From Heterodontus francisci (Eukaryota), in contig NC_090378.1 of NCBI RefSeq assembly GCF_036365525.1, positions 117,661,593 through 117,725,592 on the forward strand: a stretch of 64,000 bases of DNA, given 5' to 3'. The notes under the pieces were generated by a model. That model saw only the letters and a program-made list of their open reading frames with translations, did not search any database and was not told the DNA's origin. Shown one piece after another: positions 798-57,923 of the stretch. Every line of letters begins with the position of its first letter. The stretch's first letter is position 1. A program made the translations under genes and the position numbers.

Positions 798-1062
798 TCC
801 ATGGAGCAGGAATGTGACCACAGTCTGCAAACGTCCAGATCTCCTCTACACACTCGGTAAAAGTTGGTTACTTATATCTTGCTGGTTAAAGGGGGAATGT
901 AACTAAAGAAATACAGCTGGGCACCCTGTTATACACAGTGCTCTTCAATGAACCATTTCATTGACTGCAGCTCCTTACTAACACCTTCCACTATTCAGCA
1001 TTTGTGTTTTCGAAAGTTTCAGTATTTAAAGGATTAATAACGGAGGATTGAGGTTTACTTAC

Positions 1063-1097
1063 TCAGTCTGAGCTTGGTTCCTTTACCGAACGTAAAC
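1063..1097 (-). CDS. IGKJ: Immunoglobulin light chain (kappa/type III) J segment, germline unrearranged
   Basis: Minus strand reads G TTT ACG TTC GGT AAA GGA ACC AAG CTC AGA CTG A|GTAAGT = FTFGKGTKLRL, with the FGxG motif, a consensus splice donor at 1057-1062 and an abutting 23-RSS. Too short for the ORF track. Confidence 0.95.
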
Positions 1098-1136
1098 CAC
1101 ACTGACAGCTTCCAGTGCAGGGGCTGTACAATATCC
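1098..1136 (+). promoter_or_regulatory. J recombination signal sequence, 23-bp spacer
   Basis: Heptamer CACACTG (1098-1104, 6/7 to CACAGTG), 23-bp spacer (1105-1127), nonamer ACAATATCC (1128-1136, 7/9 to ACAAAAACC). Confidence 0.92.
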
Positions 1137-1923
1137 TCTGCTCTCTGTTTCACTCACTCACTCTCACCCTCTCTCTGTCTTTCACTGTCACTGTGTCTCT
1201 TTCTCTGTCACTCTTTGCCTGTGTGTATGTGTGTCTCTGTCTCTCACACTCTCTCTATATATATCTATTTGTCTCTGTCTCTATGTGTGCTTCTGTCTGT
1301 CTCTGTCTGTGTGTGTCATTCACAGTGTGTCACACTCTGTCTCTGCTACTTTGGGTTTCTCTCACATTCTGTCTCTCTCTCATTGTTTTCTCTCACTCTG
1401 TCTCTTTCACTCTCTCATTATGTCCCTCTCTCTCACTCCCTGTTACTCTGTCTCTGTCACACGCTCTCTCTCTCTCACACTCTCTCTCAATCTGTCTCTC
1501 TCTTTCTCTCACTCACTCTGTCTCTCTTTCTCACTCTCTCTCACTCCCTCACTCTGTCTCTCTTTTTCTCCCTCTCACTGTCTCTCTCTTTCTTTCTCTC
1601 TCACTCTCTCTCTCTTTCTCACTCTCACTCTCTCATTCTGCCTCACTCTGTCTCTCTNNNNNNNNNNNNNNNNNNNNNNNNNNNNNNNNNNNNNNNNNNN
1701 NNNNNNNNNNNNNNNNNNNNNNNNNNNNNNNNNNNNNNNNNNNNNNNNNNNNNNNNNNNNNNNNNNNNNNNNNNNNNNNNNNNNNNNNNNNNNNNNNNNN
1801 NNNNNNNNNNNNNNNNNNNNNNNNNNNNNNNNNNNCTCTCATTCAGTCTCACTCTGTCTCTCTTTTTCTCCCTCTCACTCTCTCTCTCTTTCTCTCTCTC
1901 TCACTTTCTCTCTCTCTGTCTCT
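1137..1923. repeat. CT/CA-rich low-complexity tract containing an assembly gap
   Basis: Degenerate (CT)n/CTCA sequence; the S/L-rich ORFs here are artefacts. Confidence 0.9.
1658..1835. other. Assembly gap (178 N)
   Basis: Run of N with similar CT-rich sequence on both sides. Confidence 1.
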
Positions 1924-2703
1924 AACAGACTGGGATGAATTCTCCCGGTGCCATGGAGACGGGGTTCTCATTTGGAGGTTGGGCAGGACTGGGAAAAATA
2001 CGACGAGCCGTGTCAACATGGCTCCCTGACACATTCCCGCCTCCGGGTTACTTTCCCATGGGTGTACTGGGAACCGGTCATCTGCTGCCTCCATGGAGAT
2101 GGGCAGACAATTCGAGCAATGAAGTTCACATTTAGGGGCCATTTTTGAGCCGGTGCTGGTATTTTACCAACGTCGGAGCGGCCTCCCCACCCCCGAGTGC
2201 GGAGGCCACCAGCTCAATGGAGGAGGCCTCCCGGCAGCAGGCCAGGGGACCATCGGAGACGGAGACTCTATGTCCCAATGACAGAGCTACAGGGATGAAA
2301 AGCTGCAGTCCCGCCTGTTAATAATCCTGTGGAGGAGTTTCCTAACCCTAACCCTCTTCAACCTGATGGCCCAACTGGCTTCAGCCCTTTTTATTTTACT
2401 ATTCCTCTGCAGGCAGCCAAGGGCGTCTCCATGTTGAGGGGCCCTCACTCTCGCCTGCCTGTTTCAGCAGGGCCCACCTCTCCCGGTGGAGCTGCCAGCC
2501 TGACATCACTGTGGGCCCTCTGATTGGGCCTGCAGGCTCGGGAGCCTGACTGCCATCATTAATAGGACAGTGAGTGTGGAGGTGACCAATTAAGAGGCTG
2601 CCTCCCAGAAAGTTGCTCCGGCGAGTGCTGATGACATGGGCAGGCTCGGGACCCTCATATAGGCCAGAAGTCAGAGTCCCAATGTCCACTGGGCCAACCA
2701 GCC

Positions 2704-2965
2704 ATCTCTCTCTCTCACGCTGTCCCTCTTGTGCTCTTTCCCTCTGTCTATCTCACTATCTCCCTCTCTCTCTTTCTCTCATTCTCTTTCTCTCACTCTT
2801 TCTCTCTCTCTATCTGTCTCTCTCTAGCACTTTCTCTCTCTCTCCTACTGTCTCTCTTTATCTCTCTCTCTCTCTCTCACTGTCTCTTTCTGTCATTCTC
2901 TCTCTCCCACTGTCTCTGTTTCTCTCTCTCTCCGACTGTCTCTGTTTCACTCTCTCTCTCTGTCT
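2704..2965. repeat. CT-rich low-complexity tract
   Basis: Degenerate (CT)n. Confidence 0.9.
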
Positions 2966-4072
2966 GAATTCCATGCTGCCGTGCTTGGGAAAGTTGGGAA
3001 TTCTACTTGTCGATGATAAATCTTCCAGCTGCTCTTCCCACCACATCAGATGGAAAAGCCTGGAGCCACTCAATTCCTGGGAAATGAAAATCTCCCAGCA
3101 AACCGAGCTCACCTGCCTGTGCCCTGGAAAAAAGGGGAGGGGTGTTTCTGTAAATGTGATGTTTCTGTTGCTGACTCTGCTCTTCCTCATGGACCATTTG
3201 AAAACAGTGAGTTTCAGAGTCAGTGGATCATGTCTACATGGAGTGGGAGAGGTTGTGGCCCCTGTTCCATTATTTGAAGGGGCTGCTTCTCATCCTCTGG
3301 TTCCAATTCAGGCCCACACTCCTGATCTTTGGCCACCCAGTGCAGAGGTGACTGGGCAGGTTGGAGGCCCCTCCTCGTGGGTCTGCTCCTGGGCCTGGCC
3401 AAGGTGTCCATCCACAGGCCCGAGTTGGATGGGACCCATGGGGTGGTGGCACTGGCTGCCAGTCTCTCTACCATGGCATTGTCCCCACCCGGGTGGCCCT
3501 GGAGAAGGAGCAGGGGGTGTCTGCTGGGTCACTTGAGGCCTTCAGGCTGCAGTGGGCACCACAGGGACAGGAGTGTGTAGTGGATCGTGGAAATAACATC
3601 AGGCTTTAATTTGTTCAGTTTGCTTTCTATTTATGATTTCAGTTTTATTCATTTCGACACTTTTCTAAATTGGATTTTGATTGGTGAAAATTGTGTCATC
3701 CAGATTGTCCAATCAGATGATAAGAAACCTGTTTCCATAGTAACTGACCTGGGGTGTCTGACCTGGGATGGGGGGTCAATAATAATGATCAATAATTAGT
3801 CTGTGCTCATGAAGCGACTCCACGAGAACCCAGAGAGAATCGAATGAAGCAAAATGTCAAATCTCCAGAGCTGTGAGATTCTCACTGATGAAGACAGCAG
3901 CTCCTCGTCCTCTCTAAACTCCTCCATCCTTTCTCAATTCCTCACACCGTTCAGGGGAATGTTTCTGTCAACACTCTCATCGACACATGTGGCAGCAATG
4001 CACAAAACAGCAAATATTTCCCAGATAGATAAGACAGGAGATTGAAGCAACTGTTTTAATAGAAGGTCTGTT

Positions 4073-7000
4073 TATTATATAATAAATATAACTGTGGGAT
4101 GTGTCGGTACAGGAGGTGGGACTGTGTGTCCATTATTAACTATTATATATAACTGTGGGATGTGTCAGTACAGGAGGTGGGACTGTGTGTCCATTATTAT
4201 ATATTATATATAACTGTGGGATGTGTCAGTGCAGGAGGTGTGACTGTGTGTCCATTATTATATATTATATATAACTGTGGGATGTGTCAGTGCAGGAGGT
4301 GTGACTGTGTGTCCATTATTATATATTATATATAACTGTGGGATGTGTCAGTACAGGAGGTGGGACTGTGTGTCCATTATTATATATTATATATAACTGT
4401 GGGATGTGTCAGTGCAGGAGGTGGGACTGTGTGTCCATTATTATATATTATATATAACTGTGGGATGTGTCAGTGCAGGAGGTGTGACTGTGTGTCCATT
4501 ATTAACTATTATATATAACTGTGGGATGTGTCAGTACAGGAGGTGGGTCTGTGTGTCCATTATTATATATTATATATAACTGTGGGATGTGTCAGTGCAG
4601 GAGGTGGGACTGTGTGTCCATTATTATATATTATATATAACTGTGGGATGTGTCAGTGCAGGAGGTGTGACTGTGTGTCCATTATTATATATTATATATA
4701 ACTGTGGGATGTGTCAGTACAGGAGGTGGGACTGTGTGTCCATTATTATATATTATATATAACTGTGGGATGTGTCAGTACAGGAGGTGGGACTGTGTAT
4801 CCATTATTATATATTATATATAACTGTGGATGTGTCAGTAGTGAAATTGGGACTGTGTGTCCATTATTATATATTATATATAACGGTGGATGTGTCAGTA
4901 GAGAAATTGGGACTGTGTGTCCATTATTATATATTATATATAACTGTGGGATGTGTCAGTGCAGGAGGTGTGACTGTGTGTCCATTATTATATATTATAT
5001 ATAACTGTGGGATGTGTCAGTACAGGAGGTGGGACTGTGTATCCATTATTATATATTATATATAACTGTGGATGTGTCAGTAGTGAAATTGGGACTGTGT
5101 GTCCATTATTATATATTATATATAACGGTGGATGTGTCAGTAGAGAAATTGGGACTGTGTGTCCATTATTATATATTATATATAACTGTGGGATGTGTCA
5201 GTGCAGGAGGTGTGACTGTGTGTCCATTATTATATATTATATATAACTGTGGGATGTGTCAGTACAGGAGGTGTGACTGTGTGTCCATTATTATATATTA
5301 TATATAACTGTGGGATGTGTCAGTACAGGAGGTGGGACTGTGTGTCCATTATTATATATTATATATAACTGTGGATGTGTCAGTAGTGAAATTGGGACTG
5401 TGTGTCCATTATTATATATTATATATAACGGTGGATGTGTCAGTAGAGAAATTGGGACTGTGTGTCCATTATTATATATTATATATAACTGTGGGATGTG
5501 TCAGTGCAGGAGGTGTGACTGTGTGTCCATTATTATATATTATATATAACTGTGGGATGTGTCAGTACAGGAGGTGGGACTGTGTGTCCATTATTATATA
5601 TTATATATAACTGTGGATGTGTCAGTAGTGAAATTGGGACTGTGTGTCCATTATTATATATTATATATAACGGTGGATGTGTCAGTAGAGAAATTGGGAC
5701 TGTGCATCCATTATTATATATTATATAGAACAGTGGAACGTGTCAGTCGAGGAGGTGGGACTGTGCGTCCCTTATTATATATTATCTATAACTGTGGGAT
5801 GTGTCAGTGCGGGAGGTGGGACTGTGCGTCCCATATTATATATTATATATAACAGTGGAACGTGTCAGTCGAGGAGGTGGGACTGTGCGTCCCTTATTAT
5901 ATATTATATATAACTGTGGAACGTGTTAGTCGAGGAGGTGGGACTGTGCGTCCCTTATTATATATTATATATAACTGTGGAACGTGTCAGTCGAGGAGGT
6001 GGGACTGTGCGTCCCTTATTATATATTATATATAACTGTGGAACGTGTTAGTCGAGGAGGTGGGACTGTGCGTCCCTTATTATATATTATATATAACTGT
6101 GGAACGTGTCAGTCGAGGAGGTGGGACTGTGCGTCCCTTATTATATATTATATATAACTGTGGAACGTGTCAGTCGAGGAGGTGGGACTGTGCATCCATT
6201 ATTATATATTATATATAACTGTGGGATGTGTCAGTGCGGGAGGTGGGCTGTGAGTCCATTATTATATATTATATATAAATGTGGAACATGTCAGTCGGGT
6301 AGGTGGGACTGTGCGTCCATTATTATATATTATATATAACTGTGGGATGTGTCAGTGCGGGAGGTGGGACTGTGTGTCCATTATTATATATTATCTATAA
6401 CTGTGGGATGTGTCAGTGCGGGAGGTGGGCTGTGAGTCCATTATTATATATTATATATAAATGTGGAACATGTCAGTCGGGTAGGTGGGACTGTGTGTTC
6501 ATTATTATATATTATATATAACTGTGGGATGTCAGTGCGGGAGGTGGGACTGTGTATCCATTATTATATATTATATATAACTGTGGGATGTGTCAGTGCG
6601 GGAGGTGGGACTGTGTGTCCATTATTATATATTATATATAACTGTGGGATGTGTCAGTGCAGGAAGTGGGACTGTGTGTCCATTATTATATATTATATAT
6701 AACTGTGGGATGTGTCAGTGCAGGAGGTGGGACTGTGTGTCGATTATTATATATTATATATAACTGTGGGATGTGTCAGTGCGGGAGGTGGGACTGTGTG
6801 TCCATTATTATATATTATATATAACTGTGGGATGTGTCAGTGCAGGTGGTGGGACTGTGTGTCCATTATTATATATTATATATAACTGTGGGATGTGTCA
6901 GTGCAGGAGGTGGGACTGTGTGTCGATTATTATATATTATATATAACTGTGGGATGTGTCAGTGCGGGAGGTGGGACTGTGTGTCCATTATTATATATTA

Positions 7001-10000
7001 TATATAACTGTGGGATGTGTCAGTACAGGAGGTGGGACTGTGTGTCCATTATTATATATTATATATAACTGTGGGATGTGTCAGTGCAGGAGGTGGGACT
7101 GTGTGTCCATTATTATATATTATATATAACTGTGGGATGTGTCAGTGCAGGAGGTGGGACTGTGTGTCGATTATTATATATTATATATAACTGTGGGATG
7201 TGTCAGTGCAGGAAGTGGGACTGTGTGTCCATTATTATATATTATATATAACTGTGGGATGTGTCAGTGCAGGAGGTGGGACTGTGTGTCGATTATTATA
7301 TATTATATATAACTGTGGGATGTGTCAGTGCGGGAGGTGGGACTGTGTGTCCATTATTATATATTATATATAACTGTGGGATGTGTCAGTGCAGGTGGTG
7401 GGACTGTGTGTCCATTATTATATATTATATATAACTGTGGGATGTGTCAGTGCAGGAGGTGGGACTGTGTGTCGATTATTATATATTATATATAACTGTG
7501 GGATGTGTCAGTGCGGGAGGTGGGACTGTGTGTCCATTATTATATATTATATATAACTGTGGGATGTGTCAGTGCAGGAAGTGGGACTGTGTGTCCATTA
7601 TTATATATTATATATAACTGTGGGATGTGTCAGTGCAGGAGGTGGGACTGTGTGTCGATTATTATATATTATATATAACTGTGGGATGTGTCAGTGCGGG
7701 AGGTGGGACTGTGTGTCCATTATTATATACTATATATAACTGTGGGATGTTTCAGTGCGGGAGGTGGGACTGTGTTTCCATTATTATATATTATATATAA
7801 CTGTGGGATGTGTCAGTGCGGGAGGTGGGACTGTCTGTCCATTATTATATATTATATATAACTGTGGAACGTGTCAGTCGAGGAGGTGGGACTGTGCGTC
7901 CATGATTATATATTATATATAACTGTGGGATGTGTCAGTGCGGGAGGTGGGACTGTGTGTACATTATTATATATTATATATAACTGTGGGATGTGTCAGT
8001 GCGGGAGGTGGGACTGTGTGTCCATTATTAGATATTATATATAACTGTGGGATGTGTCAGTGCGGGAGGTGGGACTGTGTGTCCATTACTATATATTATA
8101 TATAACTGTGGAACGTGTCAGTCGAGGAGGTGGGACTGTGTGTCCATTACTATATATTATATATAACTGTGGAACGTGTAAATCAAGGAGGTGGGACTGT
8201 GTCTCCATTATTATATATTATATATAACTGTGGAACGTGTCAGTCGAGGAGGTGGGACTGTGCGTCCATTATTATATATTATATATAACTGTGGGATGTG
8301 TCAGTACAGGAGGTGTGACTGTGTGTCCATTATTATATATTATATATAACTGTGGGATGTGTCAGTACAGGAGGTGGGACTGTGTGTCCATTATTATATA
8401 TTATATATAACTGTGGATGTGTCAGTAGTGAAATTGGGACTGTGTGTCCATTATTATATATTATATATAACGGTGGATGTGTCAGTAGAGAAATTGGGAC
8501 TGTGTGTCCATTATTATATATTATATATAACTGTGGGATGTGTCAGTGCAGGAGGTGTGACTGTGTGTCCATTATTATATATTATATATAACTGTGGGAT
8601 GTGTCAGTACAGGAGGTGGGACTGTGTGTCCATTATTATATATTATATATAACTGTGGATGTGTCAGTAGTGAAATTGTGACTGTGTGTCCATTATTATA
8701 TATTATATATAACGGTGGATGTGTCAGTAGAGAAATTGGGACTGTGCATCCATTATTATATATTATATAGAACAGTGGAACGTGTCAGTCGAGGAGGTGG
8801 GACTGTGCGTCCCTTATTATATATTATCTATAACTGTGGGATGTGTCAGTGCGGGAGGTGGGACTGTGCGTCCCTTATTATATATTATATATAACTGTGG
8901 AACGTGTTAGTCGAGGAGGTGGGACTGTGCGTCCCTTATTATATATTATATATAACTGTGGAACGTGTTAGTCGAGGAGGTGGGACTGTGCGTCCCTTAT
9001 TATATATTATATATAACTGTGGAACGTGTCAGTCGAGGAGGTGGGACTGTGCGTCCCTTATTATATATTATATATAACTGTGGAACGTGTTAGTCGAGGA
9101 GGTGGGACTGTGCGTCCCTTATTATATATTATATATAACTGTGGAACGTGTCAGTCGAGGAGGTGGGACTGTGCGTCCCTTATTATATATTATATATAAC
9201 TGTGGAACGTGTCAGTCGAGGAGGTGGGACTGTGCATCCATTATTATATATTATATATAACTGTGGGATGTGTCAGTGCGGGAGGTGGGCTGTGAGTCCA
9301 TTATTATATATTATATATAAATGTGGAACATGTCAGTCGGGTAGGTGGGACTGTGCGTCCATTATTATATATGATATATAACTGTGGAACGTGTCAGTCG
9401 AGGAGGTGGGACTGTGTGTTCATTATTATATATTATCTATAACTGTGGAATGTGTCAGTGCGGGAGGTGGGCTGTGAGTCCATTATTATATATTATATAT
9501 AAATGTGGAACATGTCAGTCGGGTAGGTGGGACTGTGCGTCCATTATTATATATTATATATAACTGTGGGATGTGTCAGTGCGGGAGGTGGGACTGTGTG
9601 TCCATTATTATATATTATCTATAACTGTGGGATGTGTCAGTGCGGGAGGTGGGCTGTGAGTCCATTATTATATATTATATATAAATGTGGAACATGTCAG
9701 TCGGGTAGGTGGGACTGTGTGTTCATTATTATATATTATATATAACTGTGGGATGTCAGTGCGGGAGGTGGGACTGTGTATCCATTATTATATATTATAT
9801 ATAACTGTGGGATGTGTCAGTGCGGGAGGTGGGACTGTGTGTCCATTATTATATATTATATATAACTGTGGGATGTGTCAGTGCAGGAAGTGGGACTGTG
9901 TGTCCATTATTATATATTATATATAACTGTGGGATGTGTCAGTGCAGGAGGTGGGACTGTGTGTCGATTATTATATATTATATATAACTGTGGGATGTGT

Positions 10001-40000: not shown

Positions 40001-43000
40001 AGTACAGAAGGTAGGACTGTGTGTCCATTATTATATATGATATATAACTGTGAGATGTGTCAGTACAGGAGGTGGGACTGTGTATCCATTATTATATATT
40101 ATATATAACTGTGGGATATCTCAGTATAGGAGGTGGGACTGTGTGTCCATAATTATATCTTATATATAACTGTGGGATCTGTCAGTGCAGGAGGTGGGAC
40201 TGTGTGTCCATAATTATATATTATATATAACTGTGGGACGTGTCAGTGCAGGAGGTGGGACTGTGTGTCCATAATTATATATTATATATAACTGTGGGAC
40301 GTGTCAGTACAGGAGGTGGGACTGTGTATCCATTATTATATATTATATATAACTGTGGGATATGTCAGTATAGGAGGTGGGACTGTGTGTCCATTATTAT
40401 ATATTATATATAACTGTGGGATGTGTCAGTACAGGAGCTGGGACTGTGTGTTCATTATTATATATTACATATAACTGTGGGATGTGTCAGTACAGGAGCT
40501 GGGACTGTGTGTTCATTATTATAGATTATATATAACTGTGGGATGTCTCAGTGCGGGAGGTGGGACTGTGTGTCCAATATGATATATTATATATAACTGT
40601 GGGATGTGTCAGTGCAGGAGGTGGGACTGTGTGTCCATTATTATATATTATATATAACTGTGGGATGTGTCAGTACAGTAGGTGGGACTGTGAGTCAATT
40701 ATTATATATCATATATAACTGTGGGATGTGTCAGTGCGGGAGGTGGGACTGTGTGTCTATTATTATATATTATATATAACTGTCGGTTGTGTCAGTACAG
40801 GCGGTGGGACTGTGTGTCCATTATAATATTATTTATAACTGTGGGACGTGTCAGTACAGGAGGTGGGACTGTGTGTCCATTATTATATATTATATATAAA
40901 TGTGGAATATGTCCGTATCGGAGGTGGGACTGTGTGTCCATTATTGTATATGACATATGACTGTGAGATGTGTCAGTACAGGAGGTGGGACTCTGTGTCC
41001 ATTATTATATATTATATATAACTGTGGGATGTGTCAGTACAGGAGGTGGGACTGTGTGTCCATGATAAGATTATATATAACTGTGGGATGTGTCAGTACA
41101 GGAGGTGGGACTGTTTGTCCATTATTATATATTATATATAATTGTGGGATATGTCAGTACAGGAGGTGGGACTGTGTGTCCATTATTATATATTATATAT
41201 AACTGTGTGATGTGTCAGTACAGGAGGTGGGACTGTGTGCCCATTATTATATATTATATATAACTGTGGGATGTGTCAGTACAGGAGGTGGGACTGTGTG
41301 TCCATTATTATATATTACATATAACTGTGGGATGTGTCAGTACAGGAGGTGGGACTGTGTGTCTATTATTGTATATGTTATATAACTGTGAGATGTGTCA
41401 GTACAGAAGGTGGGACTGTGTGTCCATTATTATATATTATATATAACTGTGGGATGTGTCAGTACAGGAGGTGGGACTGTGTGTCTATTATTGTATATGA
41501 TATATAACTGTGAGATGTGTCAGTACAGAAGGTAGGACTGTGTGTCCATTATTATATATGATATATAACTGTGAGATGTGTCAGTACAGGAGGTGGGACT
41601 GTGTATCCATTATTATATATTATATATAACTGTGGGATATCTCAGTATAGGAGGTGGGACTGTGTGTCCAGAATTATATATTATATATAACTGTGGGATA
41701 TGTCAGTGCAGGAGGTGGGACTGTGTGTCCATAATTATATATTATATATAACTGTGGGACGTGTCAGTGCAGGAGGTGGGACTGTGTGTCCATAATTATA
41801 TATTATGTATAACTGTGGGTTGTGTCAGTAGAGGAGGTGGGACTGTGAGTCCATTATTATATATAATATATAATTGTGGGATGTGTCAGTGCAGGAGGTG
41901 GGACTGTGTGTCCAATATTATATATTATGTATAACTGTGGGATGTGTCAGTGCAGGAGGTGGGACTGTGTGTCCAATATTATGTATTATATATAACTGTG
42001 GGATGTGTCAGTGCGGGAGGTGGGACTGTGTGTCCATTATTATATATTATATATAACTGTGGGATGTGTCAGTGCGGGAGCTGGGACTGTGTGTCCATTA
42101 TTATATATTATATATAACTGTGGGTTGTGTCAGTGGAGGAGGTGGGACTGTGAGTCCATTATTATATATTCTATATAATTGTGGGATGTGTCAGTGCAGG
42201 AGGTGGGACTGTTGTCCATTATTATATTTTATATATAAAGCTGTGGAACGTGTCAGTGCAGGAGGTGGAACCATGTGTCCATTATTATATATCAAATAAA
42301 ACTGTGGAACGTGTCAGTCGAGGAGGTGGGACTGTGTGTCCATTATTATATAATATATATAACTGTCGGTTGTGTCAGTACAGGAGGTGGGAATGTGTGT
42401 TTATTATTACATATTATATATAACTGTGGGACGTGTCAGTACAGGAGGTGGGACTGTGTGTCCATTAGAATATTATATATAACTGTGGGATGTGTCAGTA
42501 CAGGAGGTGGGACTGTGTGTCCATTATTATATATTATATATAACTGTGGGATGTGTCAGTACAGGAGGTGGGACTGTGTGTCTATTATTATATATTATAT
42601 ATAATTGTGGGATATGTCAGTACAGAAGGTGGGACTGTGTGTCCATTATTATATATTATATATAACTGTGGGATGTGTCAGTACAGGAGGTGGGACTGTG
42701 TGTCCATTATTATATATTATATATAACTGTGGGATGTGTCAGTACAGGAGGTGGGACTGTGTGTCTATTATTGTATATGTTATATAACTGTGAGATGTGT
42801 CAGTACAGAAGGTGGGACTGTGTGTCCATTATTATATATTATATATAACTGTGGGATGTGTCAGTACAGGAGGTGGGACTGTGTGTCTATTATTGTATAT
42901 GATATATAACTGTGAGATGTGTCAGTACAGAAGGTAGGACTGTGTGTCCATTATTATATATGATATATAACTGTGAGATGTGTCAGTACAGGAGGTGGGA

Positions 43001-46000
43001 CTGTGTATCCATTATTATATATTATATATAACTGTGGGATATCTCAGTATAGGAGGTGGGACTGTGTGTCCATAATTATATCTTATATATAACTGTGGGA
43101 TCTGTCAGTGCAGGAGGTGGGACTGTGTGTCCATAATTATATATTATATATAACTGTGGGACGTGTCAGTGCAGGAGGTGGGACTGTGTGTCCATAATTA
43201 TATATTATATATAACTGTGGGACGTGTCAGTACAGGAGGTGGGACTGTGTATCCATTATTATATATTATATATAACTGTGGGATATGTCAGTATAGGAGG
43301 TGGGACTGTGTGTCCATTATTATATATTATATATAACTGTGGGATGTGTCAGTACAGGAGCTGGGACTGTGTGTTCATTATTATATATTACATATAACTG
43401 TGGGATGTGTCAGTACAGGAGCTGGGACTGTGTGTTCATTATTATAGATTATATATAACTGTGGGATGTCTCAGTGCGGGAGGTGGGACTGTGTGTCCAA
43501 TATGATATATTATATATAACTGTGGGATGTGTCAGTGCAGGAGGTGGGACTGTGTGTCCATTATTATATATTATATATAACTGTGGGATGTGTCAGTACA
43601 GTAGGTGGGACTGTGAGTCAATTATTATATATCATATATAACTGTGGGATGTGTCAGTGCGGGAGGTGGGACTGTGTGTCTATTATTATATATTATATAT
43701 AACTGTCGGTTGTGTCAGTACAGGCGGTGGGACTGTGTGTCCATTATAATATTATTTATAACTGTGGGACGTGTCAGTACAGGAGGTGGGACTGTGTGTC
43801 CATTATTATATATTATATATAAATGTGGAATATGTCCGTATCGGAGGTGGGACTGTGTGTCCATTATTGTATATGACATATGACTGTGAGATGTGTCAGT
43901 ACAGGAGGTGGGACTCTGTGTCCATTATTATATATTATATATAACTGTGGGATGTGTCAGTACAGGAGGTGGGACTGTGTGTCCATGATAAGATTATATA
44001 TAACTGTGGGATGTGTCAGTACAGGAGGTGGGACTGTTTGTCCATTATTATATATTATATATAATTGTGGGATATGTCAGTACAGGAGGTGGGACTGTGT
44101 GTCCATTATTATATATTATATATAACTGTGTGATGTGTCAGTACAGGAGGTGGGACTGTGTGCCCATTATTATATATTATATATAACTGTGGAACGTGTC
44201 AGTCGAGGAGGTGGGACTGTGTGTCCATTAATATATATTATAGAGAACAGTGGGATGAGTCAGTACAGGAGGTGGGACTGTGTGTCCAATATTATATATT
44301 ATATATAACTGTGGGATGTGTCAGTGCAGGTGGTGGGACCGTGTGTCCATTATTATATATTGTATATAACTGTGGGATGTGTCAGTAGAGGAGGTGGGAC
44401 TGTGTGTCCATTATTATATATTATATGTAACTGTGGGATGTGTCAGTGCGGGAGGTGGGACTGTGTGTCCAATATTATATATTACATATAACTGTGGGAT
44501 GTGTCAGTGCGGGAGGTGGGACCATGTGTCCATTATTATCTATTATATATAACTGTGGGATGTGTCAGTGCGGGAGGTGGGACCATGTGTCCATTATTAT
44601 ATATAATATATAACTGTGGGTTGTGTCAGTAGAGGAGGTGGGACTGTGAGTCCATTATTATATATTATATATAACTGTGGGATGTGTCAGTGCAGGAGGT
44701 GGCAATGTGTGTCCCTTATTATATATTATATACAACTGTGGGATGTGTCAGTGCGGGAGGTGGGACTGTTGTCCATTATTATATATTATATATAACTGTG
44801 GGATGTGTCAGTACAGGAGCTGGGACTGTGTGTCCATTATTATATTTTATATATAAAGCTGTGGAACGTGTCAGTGCAGGAGGTGGAACCATGTGTCCAT
44901 TATTATATATTATATATAACTGTGGGATGTGTCAGTGCAGGAGGTGGGACGGTGTGTCCATAATTATATATTATATATAACTGTGGGATGTGTCAGTACA
45001 GGAGGTGGGACTGTGTATCCATTATTATATATTATATATAACTGTGGGATGTGTCAGTGCAGGAGGTGGGACTGTGTGTCCATTATTATATATTATATAT
45101 AACTGTGGGATGTGTCAGTGCAGGAGGTGGGACTGTGTCTCCATTATTATATATTATATATAAATGTGGGATGTGTCAGTACAGGAGGTGGGACTGTTTA
45201 TCCATTATTATATATTATATATAACTGTGGGATGTGTCAGTGCAGGAGGTGGGACTGTGTCTCCATTATTATATATTATATATAACTGTGGGATGTGTCA
45301 GTGCGGGAGGTGGGACTGTGTGTCCATTATTATATATTATATATAACTGTGGGATGTGTCAGTACAGGAGGTGGGACTGTGTGTTCATTATGATATATTA
45401 TATATAACTGTGGGACGTGTCAGTGCAGGGCTTGGGACTGTGTATCCATTATTATATATTATATATAACTGTGGGATGTGTCAGTACAGGAGGTGGGACT
45501 GTGTGTCCATTATTATATATTATATATAACTGTGGGACGTGTCAGTGCAGGGGTTGGGACTGTGTATCCATTATTATATATTATATATAACTGTGGGATG
45601 TGTCAGTACAGGAGGTGGGACTGTGTGTCCATTATTATATATTAAATATAACTGTGGGACGTGTCAGTGCAGGGGTTGGGACTGTGTATCCATTATTATA
45701 TATTATATATAACTGTGGGATGTGTCAGTACAGGAGGTGGGACTGTGTATCCATTATTATATATTATATATAACTGTGGGATGTGTCAGTGCAGGAGGTG
45801 GGACTGTGTCTCCATTATTATATATTATATATAACTGTGGGATGTGTCAGTGCGGGAGGTGGGACTGTGTGTCCATTATTATATATTATATATAACTGTG
45901 GGATGTGTCAGTACAGGAGGTGGGACTGTGTGTTCATTATGATATATTATATATAACTGTGGGACGTGTCAGTGCAGGGCTTGGGACTGTGTATCCATTA

Positions 46001-49000
46001 TTATATATTATATATCACTGTGGGATGTGTCAGTACAGGAGGTGGGACTGTGTGTCCATTATTATATATTATATATAACTGTGGGACGTGTCAGTGCAGG
46101 GGTTGGGACTGTGTGTTCATTATTATATATTATATATAACTGTGGGACGTGTCAGTGCAGGGGTTGGGACTGTGTATCCATTATTATATATTATATATAA
46201 CTGTGGGACGTGTCAGTGCAGGGGTTGGGACTGTGTGTTCATTATTATATATTATATATAACTGTGGGCCGTGTCAGTACAGGAGGTGGGACTGTGTGTC
46301 CATTATTATATATTATATATAACTGTGGGATGCGTCAGGACAGGAGGTGGGACTGTGTGTTCATTATTATATATTATATATAACTGTGGGCCGTGTCAGT
46401 ACAGGAGGTGGGACTGTGTGTCCATTATTATATATTATATATAACTGTGGGATGCGTCAGTATAGGAGGTGGGACTGTGCGTCCATTTTTATATATTATA
46501 TATAACTGTGGGATGCGTCAGTACAGGAGGTGGGACTGTGTGTTCATTATTATATATTATATATAACTGTGGGACGTGTCAGTGCAGGGGTTGGGACTGT
46601 GTGTTCATTATTATATATTATATATAACTGTGGGCCGTGTCAGTACAGGAGGTGGGACTGTGTGTCCATTATTATATATTATATATAACTGTGGGATGCG
46701 TCAGGACAGGAGGTGGGACTGTGTGTTCATTATTATATATTATATATAACTGTGGGCCGTGTCAGTACAGGAGGTGGGACTGTGTGTCCATTATTATATA
46801 TTATATATAACTGTGGGATGCGTCAGTATAGGAGGTGGGACTGTGCGTCCATTATTATATATTATATATAACTGTGGGATGCGTCAGTACAGGAGGTGGG
46901 ACTGTGTGTTCATTATTATATATTATATATAACTGTGGGCCGTGTCAGTACAGGAGGTGGGACTGTGTATCCATTATTATATATTATATATAACTGTGGG
47001 CCGTGTCAGTGCTGGAGGTGGGACTGTGTGTCCATTATTATATATTATATATAACTGTGGGCCGTGTCAGTACAGGAGGTGGGACTGTGTATCCATTATT
47101 ATATATTATATATAACTGTGGGATGTGTCAGTACAGGAGGTGGGACTGTGTGTCCATTATTATATATTATATATAACTGTGGGATGTGTCAGTACAGGAG
47201 GTGGGACTGTGTGTCCATTATTATATATTATATATAACTGTGGGCCGTGTCAGTGCTGGAGGTGGGACTGTGTGTCCATTATTATATATTATATATAACT
47301 GTGGGATGCGTCAGTACAGGAGGTGGGACTGTGTGTCCATTATTATATATTGTATATAACTGTGGGATGCGTCAGTACAGGAGGTGGGACTGTGTGTCCA
47401 TTATTATATATTATATATAACTGTGGGCCGTGTCAGTGCTGGAGGTGGGACTGTGTGTCCATTATTATATATTATATATAACTGTGGGATGTGTCAGTAC
47501 AGGAGGTGGGACTGTGTGTCCATTATTATATATTATATATAACTGTGGGATGTGTCAGTGCGGGAGGTGGGACTGTGTGTCCAATATTATATATTACATA
47601 TAACTGTGGGATGTGTCAGTGCGGGAGGTGGGACCATGTGTCCATTATTATCTATTATATATAACTGTGGGATGTGTCAGTGCGGGAGGTGGGACCATGT
47701 GTCCATTATTATATATAATATATAACTGTGGGTTGTGTCAGTAGAGGAGGTGGGACTGTGAGTCCATTATTATATATTATATATAACTGTGGGATGTGTC
47801 AGTGCAGGAGGTGGCAATGTGTGTCCCTTATTATATATTATATACAACTGTGGGATGTGTCAGTGCGGGAGGTGGGACTGTTGTCCATTATTATATATTA
47901 TATATAACTGTGGGATGTGTCAGTACAGGAGCTGGGACTGTGTGTCCATTATTATATTTTATATATAAAGCTGTGGAACGTGTCAGTGCAGGAGGTGGAA
48001 CCATGTGTCCATTATTATATATTATATATAACTGTGGGATGTGTCAGTGCAGGAGGTGGGACGGTGTGTCCATAATTATATATTATATATAACTGTGGGA
48101 TGTGTCAGTACAGGAGGTGGGACTGTGTATCCATTATTATATATTATATATAACTGTGGGATGTGTCAGTGCAGGAGGTGGGACTGTGTGTCCATTATTA
48201 TATATTATATATAACTGTGGGATGTGTCAGTGCAGGAGGTGGGACTGTGTCTCCATTATTATATATTATATATAAATGTGGGATGTGTCAGTACAGGAGG
48301 TGGGACTGTGTATCCATTATTATATATTATATATAACTGTGGGATGTGTCAGTGCAGGAGGTGGGACTGTGTCTCCATTATTATATATTATATATAACTG
48401 TGGGATGTGTCAGTGCGGGAGGTGGGACTGTGTGTCCATTATTATATATTATATATAACTGTGGGATGTGTCAGTACAGGAGGTGGGACTGTGTGTTCAT
48501 TATGATATATTATATATAACTGTGGGACGTGTCAGTGCAGGGCTTGGGACTGTGTATCCATTATTATATATTATATATAACTGTGGGATGTGTCAGTACA
48601 GGAGGTGGGACTGTGTGTCCATTATTATATATTATATATAACTGTGGGACGTGTCAGTGCAGGGGTTGGGACTGTGTATCCATTATTATATATTATATAT
48701 AACTGTGGGATGTGTCAGTACAGGAGGTGGGACTGTGTGTCCATTATTATATATTAAATATAACTGTGGGACGTGTCAGTGCAGGGGTTGGGACTGTGTA
48801 TCCATTATTATATATTATATATAACTGTGGGATGTGTCAGTACAGGAGGTGGGACTGTGTATCCATTATTATATATTATATATAACTGTGGGATGTGTCA
48901 GTGCAGGAGGTGGGACTGTGTCTCCATTATTATATATTATATATAACTGTGGGATGTGTCAGTGCGGGAGGTGGGACTGTGTGTCCATTATTATATATTA

Positions 49001-52000
49001 TATATAACTGTGGGATGTGTCAGTACAGGAGGTGGGACTGTGTGTTCATTATGATATATTATATATAACTGTGGGACGTGTCAGTGCAGGGCTTGGGACT
49101 GTGTATCCATTATTATATATTATATATCACTGTGGGATGTGTCAGTACAGGAGGTGGGACTGTGTGTCCATTATTATATATTATATATAACTGTGGGACG
49201 TGTCAGTGCAGGGGTTGGGACTGTGTGTTCATTATTATATATTATATATAACTGTGGGACGTGTCAGTGCAGGGGTTGGGACTGTGTATCCATTATTATA
49301 TATTATATATAACTGTGGGACGTGTCAGTGCAGGGGTTGGGTCTGTGTGTTCATTATTATATATTATATATAACTGTGGGCCGTGTCAGTACAGGAGGTG
49401 GGACTGTGTGTCCATTATTATATATTATATATAACTGTGGGATGCGTCAGGACAGGAGGTGGGACTGTGTGTTCATTATTATATATTATATATAACTGTG
49501 GGCCGTGTCAGTACAGGAGGTGGGACTGTGTGTCCATTATTATATATTATATATAACTGTGGGATGCGTCAGTATAGGAGGTGGGACTGTGCGTCCATTT
49601 TTATATATTATTTATAACTGTGGGATGCGTCAGTACAGGAGGTGGGACTGTGTGTTCATTATTATATATTATATATAACTGTGGGACGTGTCAGTGCAGG
49701 GGTTGGGACTGTGTGTTCATTATTATATATTATATATAACTGTGGGCCGTGTCAGTACAGGAGGTGGGACTGTGTGTCCATTATTATATATTATATATAA
49801 CTGTGGGATGCGTCAGGACAGGAGGTGGGACTGTGTGTTCATTATTATATATTATATATAACTGTGGGCCGTGTCAGTACAGGAGGTGGGACTGTGTGTC
49901 CATTATTATATATTATATATAACTGTGGGATGCGTCAGTATAGGAGGTGGGACTGTGCGTCCATTATTATATATTATATATAACTGTGGGATGCGTCAGT
50001 ACAGGAGGTGGGACTGTGTGTTCATTATTATATATTATATATAACTGTGGGCCGTGTCAGTACAGGAGGTGGGACTGTGTATCCATTATTATATATTATA
50101 TATAACTGTGGGCCGTGTCAGTGCTGGAGGTGGGACTGTGTGTCCATTATTATATATTATATATAACTGTGGGCCGTGTCAGTACAGGAGGTGGGACTGT
50201 GTATCCATTATTATATATTATATATAACTGTGGGATGTGTCAGTACAGGAGGTGGGACTGTGTGTCCATTATTATATATTATATATAACTGTGTGATGTG
50301 TCAGTACAGGAGGTGGGACTGTGTGTCCATTATTATATATTATATATAACTGTGGGCCGTGTCAGTGCTGGAGGTGGGACTGTGTGTCCATTATTATATA
50401 TTATATATAACTGTGGGATGCGTCAGTACAGGAGGTGGGACTGTGTGTCCATTATTATATATTGTATATAACTGTGGGATGCGTCAGTACAGGAGGTGGG
50501 ACTGTGTGTCCATTATTATATATTATATATAACTGTGGGCCGTGTCAGTGCTGGAGGTGGGACTGTGTGTCCATTATTATATATTATATATAACTGTGGG
50601 ATGTGTCAGTACAGGAGGTGGGACTGTGTGTCCATTATTATATATTATATATTACTGTGGGATGCGTCAGTACAGGAGGTGGGACTGTGTGTCCATTATT
50701 ATATATTATATATAACTGTGGGATGCGTCAGTACAGGAGGTGGGACTGTGTGTCCATTATTATATATTATATATAACTGTGGGATGTGTCAGTGCGGGAG
50801 GTGGGACTGTGTGTCCATTATTATATATTATATATAACTGTGGGATGTGTCAGTACAGGAGGTGGGACTGTGTGTTCATTATGATATATTATATATAACT
50901 GTGGGACATGTCAGTGCAGGGCTTGGGACTGTGTATCCATTATTATATATTATATATAACTGTGGGACGTGTCAGTGCAGGGGTTGGGACTGTGTGTTCA
51001 TTATTATATATTATATATAACTGTGGGCCGTGTCAGTACAGGAGGTGGGAATGTGTGTCCATTATTATATATTATATATAACTGTGGGATGCGTCAGTAC
51101 AGGAGGTGGGACTGTGTGTTCATTATTATATATTATATATAACTGTGGGCCATGTCAGTACAGGAGGTGGGACTGTGTGTCCATTATTATATATTATATA
51201 TAACTGTGGGATGCGTCAGTATAGGAGGTGGGACTGTGCGTCCATTATTATATATTATATATAACTGTGGGATGCGTCAGTACAGGAGGTGGGACTGTGT
51301 GTTCATTATTATATATTATATATAACTGTGGGCCGTGTCAGTACAGGAGGTGGGACTGTGTATCCATTATTATATATTATATATAACTGTGGGATGTGTC
51401 AGTACAGGAGGTGGGACTGTGTGTCCATTATTATATATTAGATATAACTGTGGGATGTGTCAGTGCTGGAGGTGGGACTGTGTGTCCATTATTATATATT
51501 ATATATAACTGTGGGATGTGTCAGTGCTGGAGGTGGGACTGTGTGTCCATTATTATATATTAGATATAACTGTGGGCCGTGTCAGTGCTGGAGGTGGGAC
51601 TGTGTGTCCATTATTATATATTATATATAACTGTGGGATGTGTCAGTCGAGGAGGTGGGACTGTGTGTCCATTATTATATATTATATATAACTGTGGGAT
51701 GCGTCAGTACAGGAGGTGGGACTGTGTGTTCATTATTATATATTATATATAACTGTGGGCCATGTCAGTACAGGAGGTGGGACTGTGTGTCCATTATTAT
51801 ATATTATATATAACTGTGGGATGCGTCAGTATAGGAGGTGGGACTGTGCGTCCATTATTATATATTATATATAACTGTGGGATGCGTCAGTACAGGAGGT
51901 GGGACTGTGTGTTCATTATTATATATTATATATAACTGTGGGCCGTGTCAGTACAGGAGGTGGGACTGTGTATCCATTATTATATATTATATATAACTGT

Positions 52001-52522
52001 GGGATGTGTCAGTACAGGAGGTGGGACTGTGTGTCCATTATTATATATTAGATATAACTGTGGGATGTGTCAGTGCTGGAGGTGGGACTGTGTGTCCATT
52101 ATTATATATTATATATAACTGTGGGATGTGTCAGTGCTGGAGGTGGGACTGTGTGTCCATTATTATATATTAGATATAACTGTGGGCCGTGTCAGTGCTG
52201 GAGGTGGGACTGTGTGTCCATTATTATATATTATATATAACTGTGGGATGTGTCAGTGCTGGAGGTGGGACTGTGTGTCCATTATTATATATTATATATA
52301 ACTGTGGGCCGTGTCAGTGCTGGAGGTGGGACTGTGTGTCCATTATTATATATTATATATAACTGTGGGATGTGTCAGTACAGGAGGTGGGACTGTGTGT
52401 CCATTATTATATATTATATATAACTGTGGGATGTGTCAGTACAGGAGGTGGGACTGTGTGTCCATTATTATATATTATTTATAACTGTGGGATGTGTCAG
52501 TACAGGAGGCGGGACTGTGTGT
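4073..52522. repeat. About 48.4-kb tandem array of a 61-bp unit (~790 copies) in the V-J interval
   Basis: Consensus AACTGTGGGATGTGTCAGT(A/G)C(A/G)GGAGGTGGGACTGTGTGTCCATTATTATATATTATATAT, uninterrupted and head-to-tail, with occasional 59-60-bp units. Copy number is length divided by 61. Confidence 0.99.
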
Positions 52523-52527
52523 ATTGA

Positions 52528-52555
52528 GGTTTTTGTGCGGCTCTGTCTCACTGTG
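52528..52555 (-). promoter_or_regulatory. V recombination signal sequence, 12-bp spacer, perfect consensus
   Basis: Minus strand CACAGTG (52555-52549), 12-bp spacer AGACAGAGCCGC, nonamer ACAAAAACC (52536-52528). V-12/J-23 is the kappa-type configuration. Confidence 0.98.
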
Positions 52556-52856
52556 TAGGGGCTGCTGCTATATTGCTGACAGTAATAATCTGCGACATCC
52601 TCATTCTGTACATTACTGATTGTCAGAGTGAATTTGGTGTTCTGTTGACTGCCGGTGAATCGTTCGGATATTCCTGTGTATCGATTTGTTGCATAATAGA
52701 TCAGGAGAGTGGGTTTCTGACCGTCTCGCTGCTGATACCAAGCTACATCATTGCTAACGGACTGGCTGGCCGTGCAGGTGATCGTTGCGGTCTGTCCCAG
52801 TGTCACTGACAGTGCCGGTGGAGACTGGGTCATGATGATGGTGTCTCCACTGATAC
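52556..52856 (-). CDS. IGKV: Immunoglobulin light chain (kappa/type III, shark NS4-like) V exon
   Basis: Acceptor ...CCCCTCAG|GT ATC AGT GGA. Open frame [100 protein letters not shown] has both Cys, WYQQ, LLIY and DxADYYC, and ends at the RSS heptamer. Confidence 0.97.
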
Positions 52857-53042
52857 CTGAGGGGTAATAGAGAAACAGAGTGAAGTAAGAACTGTCACAG
52901 AAAGACCCTGTAAAATGAGATATTATTAGAGACAGTGACCGCTCCTCTTGTTTCATCATTTTCTCTCCAATCACAAGTCAGTAGAATTGGACTGAAATAA
53001 ACAGCAGGAAAATATTAACCGTGGAAGGAGAGAGATTTGTAC
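52857..53042 (-). other. Leader-V intron (186 bp, phase 1)
   Basis: GT..AG boundaries; splicing rebuilds G|GT (Gly) in frame. Confidence 0.92.
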
Positions 53043-53091
53043 CTGCGACGCAGAATGCCAGAGGCCAGATCAGCTGGATGGGTGAAATCAT
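53043..53091 (-). CDS. IGKV: Ig light chain leader exon
   Basis: ACC ATG start context; encodes MISPIQLIWPLAFCVA(G), 49 nt, followed by a GT donor. Hydrophobic signal peptide in frame with the V exon. Confidence 0.94.
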
Positions 53092-53150
53092 GGTGTCTGC
53101 TCCTGTCTCTGTGCCTGGTTACTGATAAACTCTCCCTTCACTGGGCTCTG

Positions 53151-53160
53151 CTTTATAAAG
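53151..53160 (-). promoter_or_regulatory. TATA box of the V promoter
   Basis: CTTTATAAAG (contains TATAAA) about 60 bp upstream of the ATG. Confidence 0.75.
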
Positions 53161-53197
53161 CTGCAGCCTGTGAGAGTCTGACTGCCTGTTTCTCAGT

Positions 53198-53205
53198 ATG
53201 TAAAT
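53198..53205 (-). promoter_or_regulatory. Octamer variant ATTTACAT of the V promoter
   Basis: 7/8 match to ATTTGCAT in light-chain orientation, about 40 bp upstream of TATA and 107 bp upstream of the ATG. Confidence 0.7.
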
Positions 53206-53235
53206 GGTATCACCCAGAGAAAGGCACGTCAGCAA

Positions 53236-53892
53236 CTCTCACTTCCTCTTCTCTCTTTCTGTTTCCCTCACTACCTCCCTCCTTCTATTTCTCACCCCCT
53301 CTCTCTCTGCCTCTTTATCTCCTATCTCAATCCCTTTCCCTCTTTTGCCCTCTCCCTCTCACTCACTGTCTCTCTCTCCCCCACCCTCCTGAAATCTTTC
53401 TCACTCCCCTTCCCTCATTCTCCTTGTCTCTCTCTCCATATCTCTTTCTCTCTTTTTCTGCTTCTCCCCATCCCTACCTCTCACTCTTTGTCTCTCTGCC
53501 TGCTCTCTGTCCGCTCTCTCTCCCTCATTCTCTGTCTGTATCTCTCTCTGTCTGTGTCTTTGTCTTTCTGCCTACTCATCTCTCTCTCCCTCACTCTTTG
53601 CCTGTCTCCCCATCTTGTTCTTCCAATCTCACTCTCCCTATTTTGCTCTCTCCTCCTCTCCCTGTCTCCCTGTCTCTGTCTCTCTCCCTCCCTATCTCTC
53701 TATCTCTCTGTCCTTGTTCCTCTGCCTACTCATCTCTCTCCCACCCTCCATTGTTCTGTAATTCTGTAACTGATCTCTAAAACAGGAGTTATTACTGGAG
53801 ACTGGAACACTTTGAGGCCTGGTGCAGCAGTTAAATGTCTCCCTCTCTATCTCTCTCTGTCTCACAGCCTCCACCTCACTCTCTCTTTCCCA
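53236..53892. repeat. CT-rich polypyrimidine tract upstream of the V promoter
   Basis: Degenerate (CT)n with a short interruption at about 53750-53835. Confidence 0.85.
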
Positions 53893-54377: not shown

Positions 54378-54666
54378 CCTCCAATAGGGACCAGTAAACA
54401 TGGGCCTCCTTCCCACTGGACCTCCAATAGGGACCAGTAAACATGGGCCTCCTTCCCACTGGGCATCCAATAGGGACCAGTAAACATGGGCCTCCTTCCC
54501 ACTGGGCATCCAATAGGGACCAGTAAACATGGGCCTCCTTCCCACTGGGCATCCAATAGGGACCAGTAAACATGGGCCTCCATCCCACTGGGCATCCAAT
54601 AGGGACCAGCAAACATGGGCCTCCATCCCACTGGGCCTCCAATAGGGACCAGTAAACATGGGCCTC
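54378..54666. repeat. 43-bp minisatellite, about 6.7 copies
   Basis: Unit CCAATAGGGACCAGTAAACATGGGCCTCCTTCCCACTGGGCAT starts at 54381, 54424, 54467, 54510, 54553, 54596 and 54639. Confidence 0.95.
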
Positions 54667-57300: not shown

Positions 57301-57821
57301 CTGCTTTTTGGCTGAAACATGTGGATTGGAACAGGAGGTGTGCTGGAGTTTAAACAATGAGTTAAATATGGAGGTAGTGTCATTAGTGGGTAATGCACAG
57401 TCTACATTGTGTCCAGGACCCTCTCTAAAAGATGTCTTTCTCTTTTTCCTTTTTCAGGTCCAGGGCTGTAATTAAGGAGCTGAAAGAATATTTAGTGAAG
57501 AAGTTTCCGGACTGTGCGGTGTGTGTGAAGGTGTTCGGCAGTGACTGATGATTACAGCTCCTTGTTCAGTCTGCTCCGCCCTCACCACTGATCAAGCCAT
57601 GTAACCTCCTGTCACACTGAGTGAAATTACAATCGATATCATAGTGTCAGTCACAGAAAACAACAGCATCACAGTCTGAGTCACTGGGACAGACATCACT
57701 GCCGCACATCAAAGAACAGACCCCTTATCCCCTCTCACCATGTTCATAAACCATACAGTAGAGAAAATATACTGACAAACACCACCTTATATTAAACACT
57801 CACACCCATAGAACACCATCA

Positions 57822-57900: not shown

Positions 57901-57923
57901 TCTGTGTCAGCTCCTGTACATGT

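Follow-up and report, generated by a model that had tools for sequence, protein, structure and literature searches.

A 61-bp satellite array in the V–J interval of a probable, apparently functional kappa light-chain cluster of the shark Heterodontus francisci

Immunoglobulin genes of cartilaginous fish are the textbook "miniclusters", and the compactness of these units underlies ideas on rearrangement within a cluster and on the choice of one cluster per cell. The stretch of Heterodontus francisci DNA analysed here (the window, 64 kb) raises the question of whether a V and a J segment that lie tens of kilobases apart can form one such cluster, and of what fills the space between them. The answer that we consider probable is a germline, unrearranged and apparently functional kappa cluster, the V–J DNA of which was inflated from about 0.5 kb to about 51 kb by a 61-bp satellite. 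A sequence-only reading had proposed an intact kappa-type V (with promoter, leader, open frame and perfect 12-RSS) and one J with a 23-RSS and a splice donor; every one of these elements was recovered where it had placed them, all on the minus strand (Table 1).

Table 1. Features of the V, the satellite array and the J in the window
Feature	Coordinates	Strand	Details
Octamer-like promoter motif ATTTACAT	53198–53205	-	matches 7/8 of ATTTGCAT
TATA-like motif TTTATAAAG	53151–53159	-	promoter region of V
Leader exon	53043–53091	-	MISPIQLIWPLAFCVA + G; ATG at 53091; GT donor
Leader intron	52857–53042	-	186 bp; GT..AG
V exon, kappa-like	52556–52856	-	open frame; conserved Cys, Trp, YYC
V 12-RSS	52528–52555	-	CACAGTG + 12-bp spacer + ACAAAAACC; 7/7 and 9/9
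V heptamer CACAGTG	52549–52555	-	
V nonamer ACAAAAACC	52528–52536	-	
Linker TCAAT	52523–52527	-	5 bp; between V nonamer and first satellite unit
61-bp satellite	4072–52522		48,451 bp, no N; Tandem Repeats Finder: period 61, 795.0 copies, 91% matches
Non-satellite interval, J side of array	1836–4071		CT-rich tracts 1836–1925 and 2700–2965
Assembly gap	1658–1835		178 N; within CT-rich low-complexity tract; between J and array
J 23-RSS	1098–1136	-	heptamer CACACTG (6/7), 23-bp spacer, nonamer ACAATATCC (7/9); plus-strand reading
J heptamer	1098–1104		
J nonamer ACAATATCC	1128–1136		
J coding segment FTFGKGTKLRL	1063–1097	-	ends in phase 1
J splice donor GTAAGT	1057–1062	-	

The V exon matched the Pfam V-set domain (E = 2.9e-19); no stop or frameshift interrupts V or J, and their RSSs and splice sites are likewise intact. 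The top protein matches of the V exon were V genes of sharks (Chiloscyllium and Scyliorhinus, 77–78% identity), followed by IGKV of other vertebrates, and 16 of 17 leader residues were identical to those of Chiloscyllium punctatum leaders. A tblastn search combined with an FGXG motif scan found this single V and this single J, and no second copy of either, in the 64-kb window, where their RSSs were the only strong ones. The 1,062 bp downstream (left) of J contained no Ig-like frame or C exon; the expected C site, a few kilobases downstream of J, lies beyond the window, and V and J are here the visible part of a putative complete cluster.

V and J share one transcriptional orientation, and the 12-RSS of V and the 23-RSS of J converge, so that V–J joining would be deletional; our RSS scan agreed with the geometry put forward in the sequence-only reading. 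The two coding ends lie 51,458 bp apart (1098–52555), and the extent given by Tandem Repeats Finder assigns 94.2% of this interval to one 61-bp array, in line with the earlier figure of about 94%. Since the array fills 48,451 bp of the interval, the V–J distance is set by one satellite, and since it sits between convergent RSSs, joining would excise it, as had also been claimed. By comparison, the V–J intervening sequence of nurse-shark NS4 kappa genes measures 502–524 bp (PMC2193156), which bears out the earlier premise that shark clusters are normally compact; the spacing in the window is about 100 times larger and lacks the compactness of a minicluster. Apart from this interval, the locus resembles the NS4 nurse-shark and horned-shark type III clusters (Lee et al. 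2000, PMC2193156): both have one V and one J in the same orientation, a split leader with a 186-bp intron, a 12-RSS on V and a 23-RSS on J, and both belong to multi-copy families of near-identical clusters in which joining excises the intervening DNA. The window differs further in having neither a germline-joined form nor a C exon. Judged from their sequence, this V and this J are of the elasmobranch kappa type (type III or NS4-like).

Next to the V gene, the satellite begins 5 bp past the nonamer. A fixed 61-bp register drifts along it because the units run from 59 to 63 bp, and the array was cut into units by an anchor. This segmentation yielded 794 units (260 distinct) plus a partial unit at each end; the units averaged 94.4% identity to the consensus without a gradient along the array, their order was non-random and variation was concentrated at a few hot positions. 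No further copy of the unit was found in the rest of the window. Comparison of unit runs revealed internal tandem duplications spanning 2.1–7.3 kb at 99.8–100% identity, including stretches of 7.26 kb (99.94%), 2.93 kb (100%) and 3.17 kb (99.8%). These very recent multi-kilobase duplications show that array length is evolutionarily labile and is changing now. Head-to-tail units (61 bp here), a mean identity of 94%, multi-kilobase higher-order duplications and hot-position variation are all shared with vertebrate satellites and minisatellites under unequal exchange, whereas two points would set the array apart from other vertebrate satellites: judged by rough depth, it may be confined to V–J intervals of kappa clusters instead of centromeres or telomeres, and it would be deleted in B cells that use the cluster. 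The unit also contains a GGAGGTGGG motif resembling the minisatellite core. Considered as an RSS derivative or as a CTCF site, the unit gave matches at the level expected by chance for a single 61-mer, and neither identity was retained.

The array also bears on the correctness of the assembly. A satellite common to many kappa clusters might have caused a mis-join or a false expansion, in which case V and J would come from different clusters or the array would be much shorter than 48 kb. We regard such an artefact as unlikely, even though an N gap lies between J and the array, duplications of 2.9–7.3 kb reach 99.8–100% identity and, at positions 53096 and 52537, DNA contigs of the listed (same) sample disagree with the window. 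These contigs could stem from an allele or from a paralogue. Near-identical internal duplications make up about 15 kb of the array, and if any of this were an assembly artefact, the true array would be shorter, at about 33 kb or more. However, the 260 distinct unit types stand in an ordered, non-random sequence, as long accurate reads need for assembly, and no gap interrupts the sequence from 1836 to 53205, which runs from V and its RSS through the entire array and 2.2 kb past it. By a rough estimate, satellite k-mers in DNA are about 4,000–10,000 times as deep as the V contigs, which speaks against gross over-assembly. One DNA contig joins the satellite to a flank resembling 4041–4071 (loose end at 52404), and therefore at least one other array in the genome shares the J-side boundary, the shared part being the last ~30 bp of flank. 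A mis-join between paralogous arrays would, moreover, still keep the V–satellite–J architecture. As for the gap itself, its 178-N length is only an estimate; so odd a size suggests that the join was measured and not set arbitrarily, and the best match of its right flank (1848–1915) is its left flank (1548–1615; 95.6% over 68 nt). Because this gap separates J from the array, their linkage is graded as likely, on the similarity of low-complexity flanks and on analogy with other clusters.

Expression was assessed with same-species de Bruijn contigs at least 95% like the window V (RNA runs X1, X4 and X7), which pool many paralogous V genes. Contig depth was about 1e6 in the exon against about 1e2 in the intron, and the leader intron was spliced out (joints skip 186, CT..AC on the plus strand). 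Loose ends began exactly at 52556, the predicted end of V, and read as kappa J in frame. The kappa V family thus joins V to J in frame and is highly expressed, at the level of the family rather than of this cluster. The check proposed in the sequence-only reading, a search of RNA for this V joined to its J, gave in-frame joints for the V family; the commonest J in them (TTT GGT…AGG) differs from the J of the window cluster (TTC GGT…AGA).

This difference would fit a disabled cluster, in which the satellite has shut off recombination of the V–J pair, either by heterochromatin or because locus-contraction machinery to bridge the distance is lacking, and in which all expressed family members stem from clusters whose arrays are short or absent. 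The family-level scope of the RNA data is compatible with such a disabled cluster, as is the concentration of unit variation at a few hot positions; unit variants that resemble CpG/TpG/CpA alternatives (noted by eye) would fit germline methylation. Nevertheless, inertness appears quite unlikely to us: intact coding segments, RSSs and splice sites, including a perfect 12-RSS, would be unexpected in long-dead segments; one productive joint (X7, loose end at 52564) carries the TTC-GGT-AAA J variant of the window cluster; and 17% of the RNA depth at 53096 carries the T of the window.

Sequence beside the V RSS was compared with that of a second shark by way of the read-through tails of gene models. 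In three V models of Chiloscyllium punctatum the reading frame runs on past the RSS, and the resulting tail matched window positions 52555–52478 at 17 of 25 residues (E = 4e-11), with an equal 5-bp offset from the nonamer (KNL-N-THS). At this level of comparison, the RSS-adjacent sequence, that is, the first satellite unit, is conserved between Heterodontus francisci and Chiloscyllium punctatum. When the tail of model P0007 (region 100–143) served as a protein query, the only match was P0007 itself. Model P0010, with a long alignment past the V end, had been a candidate for another satellite-flanked V and was discarded; labelled "jgi: hypothetical protein" in the database, it is presumably a kappa V of mammalian (mouse) type, the model of which reads through the RSS. 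Separately, the 5' region of the window V looks, by eye and unaligned, like the read-through 5' end of Chiloscyllium model P0002.

The position of the satellite invites comparison with a known regulator. In mouse, the Vκ–Jκ intervening DNA with its Sis silencer and Cer CTCF elements acts as a negative regulator of rearrangement and, by way of Ikaros, directs alleles to the (satellite) heterochromatin of centromeres (PMC3928034). The satellite occupies the Sis-equivalent position, and both are non-coding V–J DNA lost on joining. Sis, however, belongs to a translocon locus and consists of unique sequence instead of a satellite; the resemblance is positional only. Conceivably, the satellite could likewise be a cis-regulator of rearrangement. 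As a Sis-like silencer or insulator, it would hold unrearranged clusters in heterochromatin, lowering joining per cluster and aiding expression of one cluster per cell; as a decoy, it would draw RAG to about 470 weak, co-oriented 23-RSS-like motifs. The 5-bp boundary and the first-unit sequence kept across species would fit a regulatory role, as would the two TGGGA cores in each unit (1,262 in the array), which resemble Ikaros sites. In addition, CACAGTT-23-ACACAGTCC occurs on the V strand in 473 units, and five units contain a perfect RSS heptamer. Like cryptic RSSs and RAG off-target sites (as treated in statistical RSS models, PMC2193808), the unit thus has a CAC-initiated heptamer 23 bp from a nonamer-like 9-mer on the strand of the V RSS, but the match is at threshold (6/7 and 6/9) and the nonamer-like part has no A-tract, as one chance motif amplified 470 times would appear; in this orientation, recombination with the V RSS would invert the DNA and yield no useful joint. 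Both the sequence of the unit and the length of the array change rapidly in evolution, as expected of neutral satellites, and the conservation of the first unit may merely reflect its proximity to the RSS. We judge regulation by the satellite to be very unlikely. A broader proposal is that the V–J intervals of the kappa clusters of this shark hold a conserved satellite specific to these clusters, which would throttle recombination according to its variable length or tether clusters to heterochromatin as Sis does. Array length would then set the chance of joining and thereby aid single-cluster (isotypic or haplotype) exclusion in a genome where light-chain clusters are many and independent; this is, in our estimate, improbable.

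We return to the unrearranged kappa cluster with a satellite-inflated interval. The satellite would have arisen from the ancestral intervening sequence beside the V RSS and would predate the multiplication of kappa clusters, and unequal exchange would now alter its length. In a cell that uses the cluster, RAG would cut at 52555/52556 and 1097/1098 and join V to J, while the ~51-kb interval, satellite included, would leave as a signal-joint circle. By default we assume that the satellite is mainly a tolerated passenger, because this DNA is neither coding nor spliced and is deleted in cells using the gene, and because 51 kb is well within the working range of RAG in translocon loci. In the literature that we searched, including the immunoglobulin section of VGP, we found no description of satellite-filled shark V–J intervals; the satellite-split V–J is a real, new form of shark light-chain minicluster.

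If members of the kappa family have V and J tens of kilobases apart with a private satellite between them, shark RAG would routinely synapse RSSs over long repetitive spacers, and alleles and paralogues with spacers of different length would form a natural series in which effects of distance and chromatin on V(D)J recombination can be tested. Such an arrangement would also be a warning for annotation, as seemingly orphaned shark light-chain V and J–C units may be the two parts of a single cluster. Furthermore, the array would be a rare example of a satellite lost by programmed deletion in a single somatic lineage, and should the array act as a throttle on recombination, B cells would be natural somatic deletion mutants for it.

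The scans bore out the sequence-only reading of a single V gene with a perfect 12-RSS (recombination signal sequence) and a single J segment with a 23-RSS and a splice donor, in convergent arrangement. The 23-RSS preceding J matched at six of seven heptamer and seven of nine nonamer positions; no other RSS of comparable quality was detected on either strand of the window, and protein and motif scans of the 64 kb revealed neither a second V nor a second J. Joining would be deletional, since V is upstream, J shares its orientation and the two RSSs converge; the coding ends are separated by 51,458 bp. The 1,062 bp beyond J contained no C exon, which would be expected farther downstream, past the window edge. 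The V gene was complete (Table). Its exon encoded a V-set domain (Pfam, E 2.9e-19) with nearest database matches among V genes of Chiloscyllium punctatum and Scyliorhinus torazame (77–78% identity), followed, after the shark genes, by IGKV of mammals and fishes, and its leader was identical to bamboo-shark leaders at 16 of 17 positions.

Table. Features of the kappa cluster and of its surroundings, in window positions
Feature	Position	Strand	Description	Basis
J coding segment	1063-1097	-	FTFGKGTKLRL, ends in phase 1, GTAAGT donor	sequence reading
N gap	1658-1835		178 N
61-bp array	4072-52522		period 61, 795 copies, 91% matches	Tandem Repeats Finder
Array segmental duplication	14314-28951		7,259 bp (7.26 kb) twice, 99.94%
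Array segmental duplication	38339-44184		2,928 bp (2.93 kb) twice, 100%
Array segmental duplication	44368-50652		3,172 bp (3.17 kb) twice, 99.8%
Array segmental duplication			2,074 bp twice, 99.86%
V 12-RSS	52528-52555	-	perfect: CACAGTG, 12-bp spacer, ACAAAAACC	adjoins V coding end
V exon	52556-52856	-	open, contains WYQQ	sequence reading
Leader intron	52857-53042	-	GT..AG, 186 bp	prediction; splice seen in RNA contigs
Leader exon	53043-53091	-	ATG at 53091, MISPIQLIWPLAFCVA + G of split codon	sequence reading
TATA-like motif	53151-53159	-		sequence reading
Octamer-like promoter motif	53198-53205	-	ATTTACAT	sequence reading
Tandem array upstream of V	54380-54666		43-bp x 6.7, unrelated
Candidate exon	57458-57548	+	reads SRAVIKELKEYLVKKFPDCAVCVKVFGSD-stop
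Degenerate LINE remnant	57918-61186, e.g. 59170-59526	-	weak RVT_1 match, E 3e-4, below cut-off	Pfam
Tandem array upstream of V	62021-63083		32-bp x 33, unrelated
Tandem array upstream of V	63214-63726		23-bp x 22, unrelated
CT-rich low-complexity tracts	1137-1925, 2700-2965, 53240-53760

A single satellite array occupied 94.2% of the V–J interval, starting 5 bp past the V nonamer and stopping 2.2 kb before the N gap, some 3 kb from J, and no copy of its unit occurred in the rest of the window. The proposal that a 48-kb satellite sets a V–J distance of about 51 kb thus held for the distance and for the share of the array, but J is joined to the array block only across the gap. Anchor-based segmentation gave 794 units (758 of exactly 61 bp; 260 distinct) whose identity to the consensus averaged 94.4% and was flat along the array, with variation clustered at a small number of hot positions. 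Unit types followed a strongly structured order that included very recent tandem segmental duplications, the four listed jointly amounting to about 15 kb. These near-identical copies arose very recently by unequal exchange or were duplicated in assembly; should any of them prove to be assembly errors, about 33 kb or more of array would remain.

The gap lies outside any coding frame within a CT-rich low-complexity tract (C+T 81–89%). It separates J from the gap-free block (1836–53205), to which J is probably linked and in which V, the V RSS, the whole array, and the 2.2-kb flank are found. Its right flank (1848–1915) matched the left flank (1548–1615) best in the window, at 95.6% over 68 nt versus about 83% for the other CT tracts, a likeness that would fit a break inside one tract and falls short of proof of continuity. 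From its odd size, the gap may represent a measured rather than an arbitrary join. Mis-assembly, in which linkage or array length would be artefactual, draws on this gap and on the near-identical duplications; set beside the flank likeness and the gap-free block, we consider it unlikely.

Three C. punctatum V gene models (P0004, P0007, and P0008) read past the V end (example tail, HSDTQLYKNLNTHSTTACTDTSHFY), and their tails matched the translation of window 52555–52478 at 17/25, 15/22, and 15/21 positions (E 4e-11 to 5e-9). The RSS accounts for the first part of each tail. The rest (NTHS…SHSY) corresponds to the GC-rich portion of the array's first unit, again offset by 5 bp from the nonamer, so that the source sequence of the satellite already adjoined the kappa V RSS in an ancestor shared by these sharks. 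All V and J features, including the 186-bp leader intron, were like those of NS4, the nurse-shark kappa-type (type III) light-chain genes, with the sole exception of compactness: the NS4 V–J intervening sequence is 502–524 bp (PMC2193156), whereas that in the window is 51 kb. We found no description of satellite-filled V–J intervals in the papers searched, among them the VGP survey of immunoglobulins and an elasmobranch Ig linkage study from 2025, although coverage was incomplete and this is absence of evidence only.

Sequencing reads from a single sample of one organism were compared as Logan contigs over 52380–53300, using three small runs that were RNA-like in behaviour (X1, X4, and X7) and one DNA run (X2). 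RNA depth was about 1e6 in the exon and about 1e2 in the intron, and the leader intron was removed exactly as predicted. The match of RNA contigs to the window broke off at the final V coding base, 52556, beyond which they read as J, in frame on the coding strand; further loose ends at 52564 and 52573 were also in-frame CDR3–J joints. These results indicate that V genes at least 95% like the window V rearrange to kappa J and are very highly expressed, at the level of a family, the data combining thousands of contigs from numerous paralogues. The anticipated V–J joining was therefore found for the V family, but the most frequent J in the joints (TTT…AGG) differed from the window J (TTC…AGA); one productive joint did carry the TTC/AAA form of the window J. 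A recombinationally dead cluster, whose own V and J no longer join, is compatible with this commonest J; alongside the perfect 12-RSS, the open V exon, and the productive joint of the TTC/AAA form, we regard it as quite improbable.

At 53096, in the 5′UTR, the DNA and most RNA contigs carried C where the window has T (83% C and 17% T by RNA depth), and at 52537, the last spacer base beside the nonamer, A where the window has G; these differences point to an allele or the other haplotype, or else to a near-identical paralogue. V contigs of the DNA run had a depth of about 100–110 and its satellite bins totalled 0.44–1.06 million, or roughly 4,000–10,000 unit equivalents (0.25–0.6 Mb), an order of magnitude only, as depth is not copy number. 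At that precision, the amount matches a satellite mostly restricted to about a dozen arrays of this kind, rather than one of the major genome-wide satellites. A contig from the DNA run passed from satellite into letters like window 4041–4071, indicating at least one other array with the same J-side boundary.

One X7 contig ran from a satellite unit at 52449 directly into letters identical to 57461–57490. Plus-strand splicing of a donor carried by the satellite unit, GAG|GTGGGA (found in 625 units; intron side 52448), to an acceptor at 57457/57458 would give such a contig, and the V gene would then sit antisense within the implied intron; the contig could instead come from a paralogous locus. 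The candidate exon had no Pfam match.

A regulatory role for the satellite would take the form of either silencing or a RAG decoy. The former would resemble Sis, a silencer in the mouse Vκ–Jκ interval that is bound by Ikaros and CTCF and directs alleles to heterochromatin at centromeres (PMC3928034). Regarding the latter, CACAGTT-23-ACACAGTCC occurred in 473 of 794 units on the minus strand, co-oriented with the V RSS, and five units had a perfect CACAGTG heptamer. However, the unit motif is at threshold (6/7, 6/9) without the nonamer A-tract, its orientation would yield inversion with V, and, as one chance-level motif that amplification has multiplied, it carries little weight. We hold a regulatory role to be very improbable. 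On the earlier proposal that array length could tune cluster usage, these data weigh neither for nor against.

For RAG, 51 kb is a small distance in translocon loci. The likely reading is a genuine kappa cluster, probably functional, in which a satellite has colonised the spacer that joining would excise. The satellite would have originated from ancestral V–J intervening DNA and would be amplified and resized by unequal exchange, the recent multi-kb duplications indicating that array length shifts in multi-kb steps. As sequence that lies outside coding and spliced regions and would be lost on joining, it may be tolerated.
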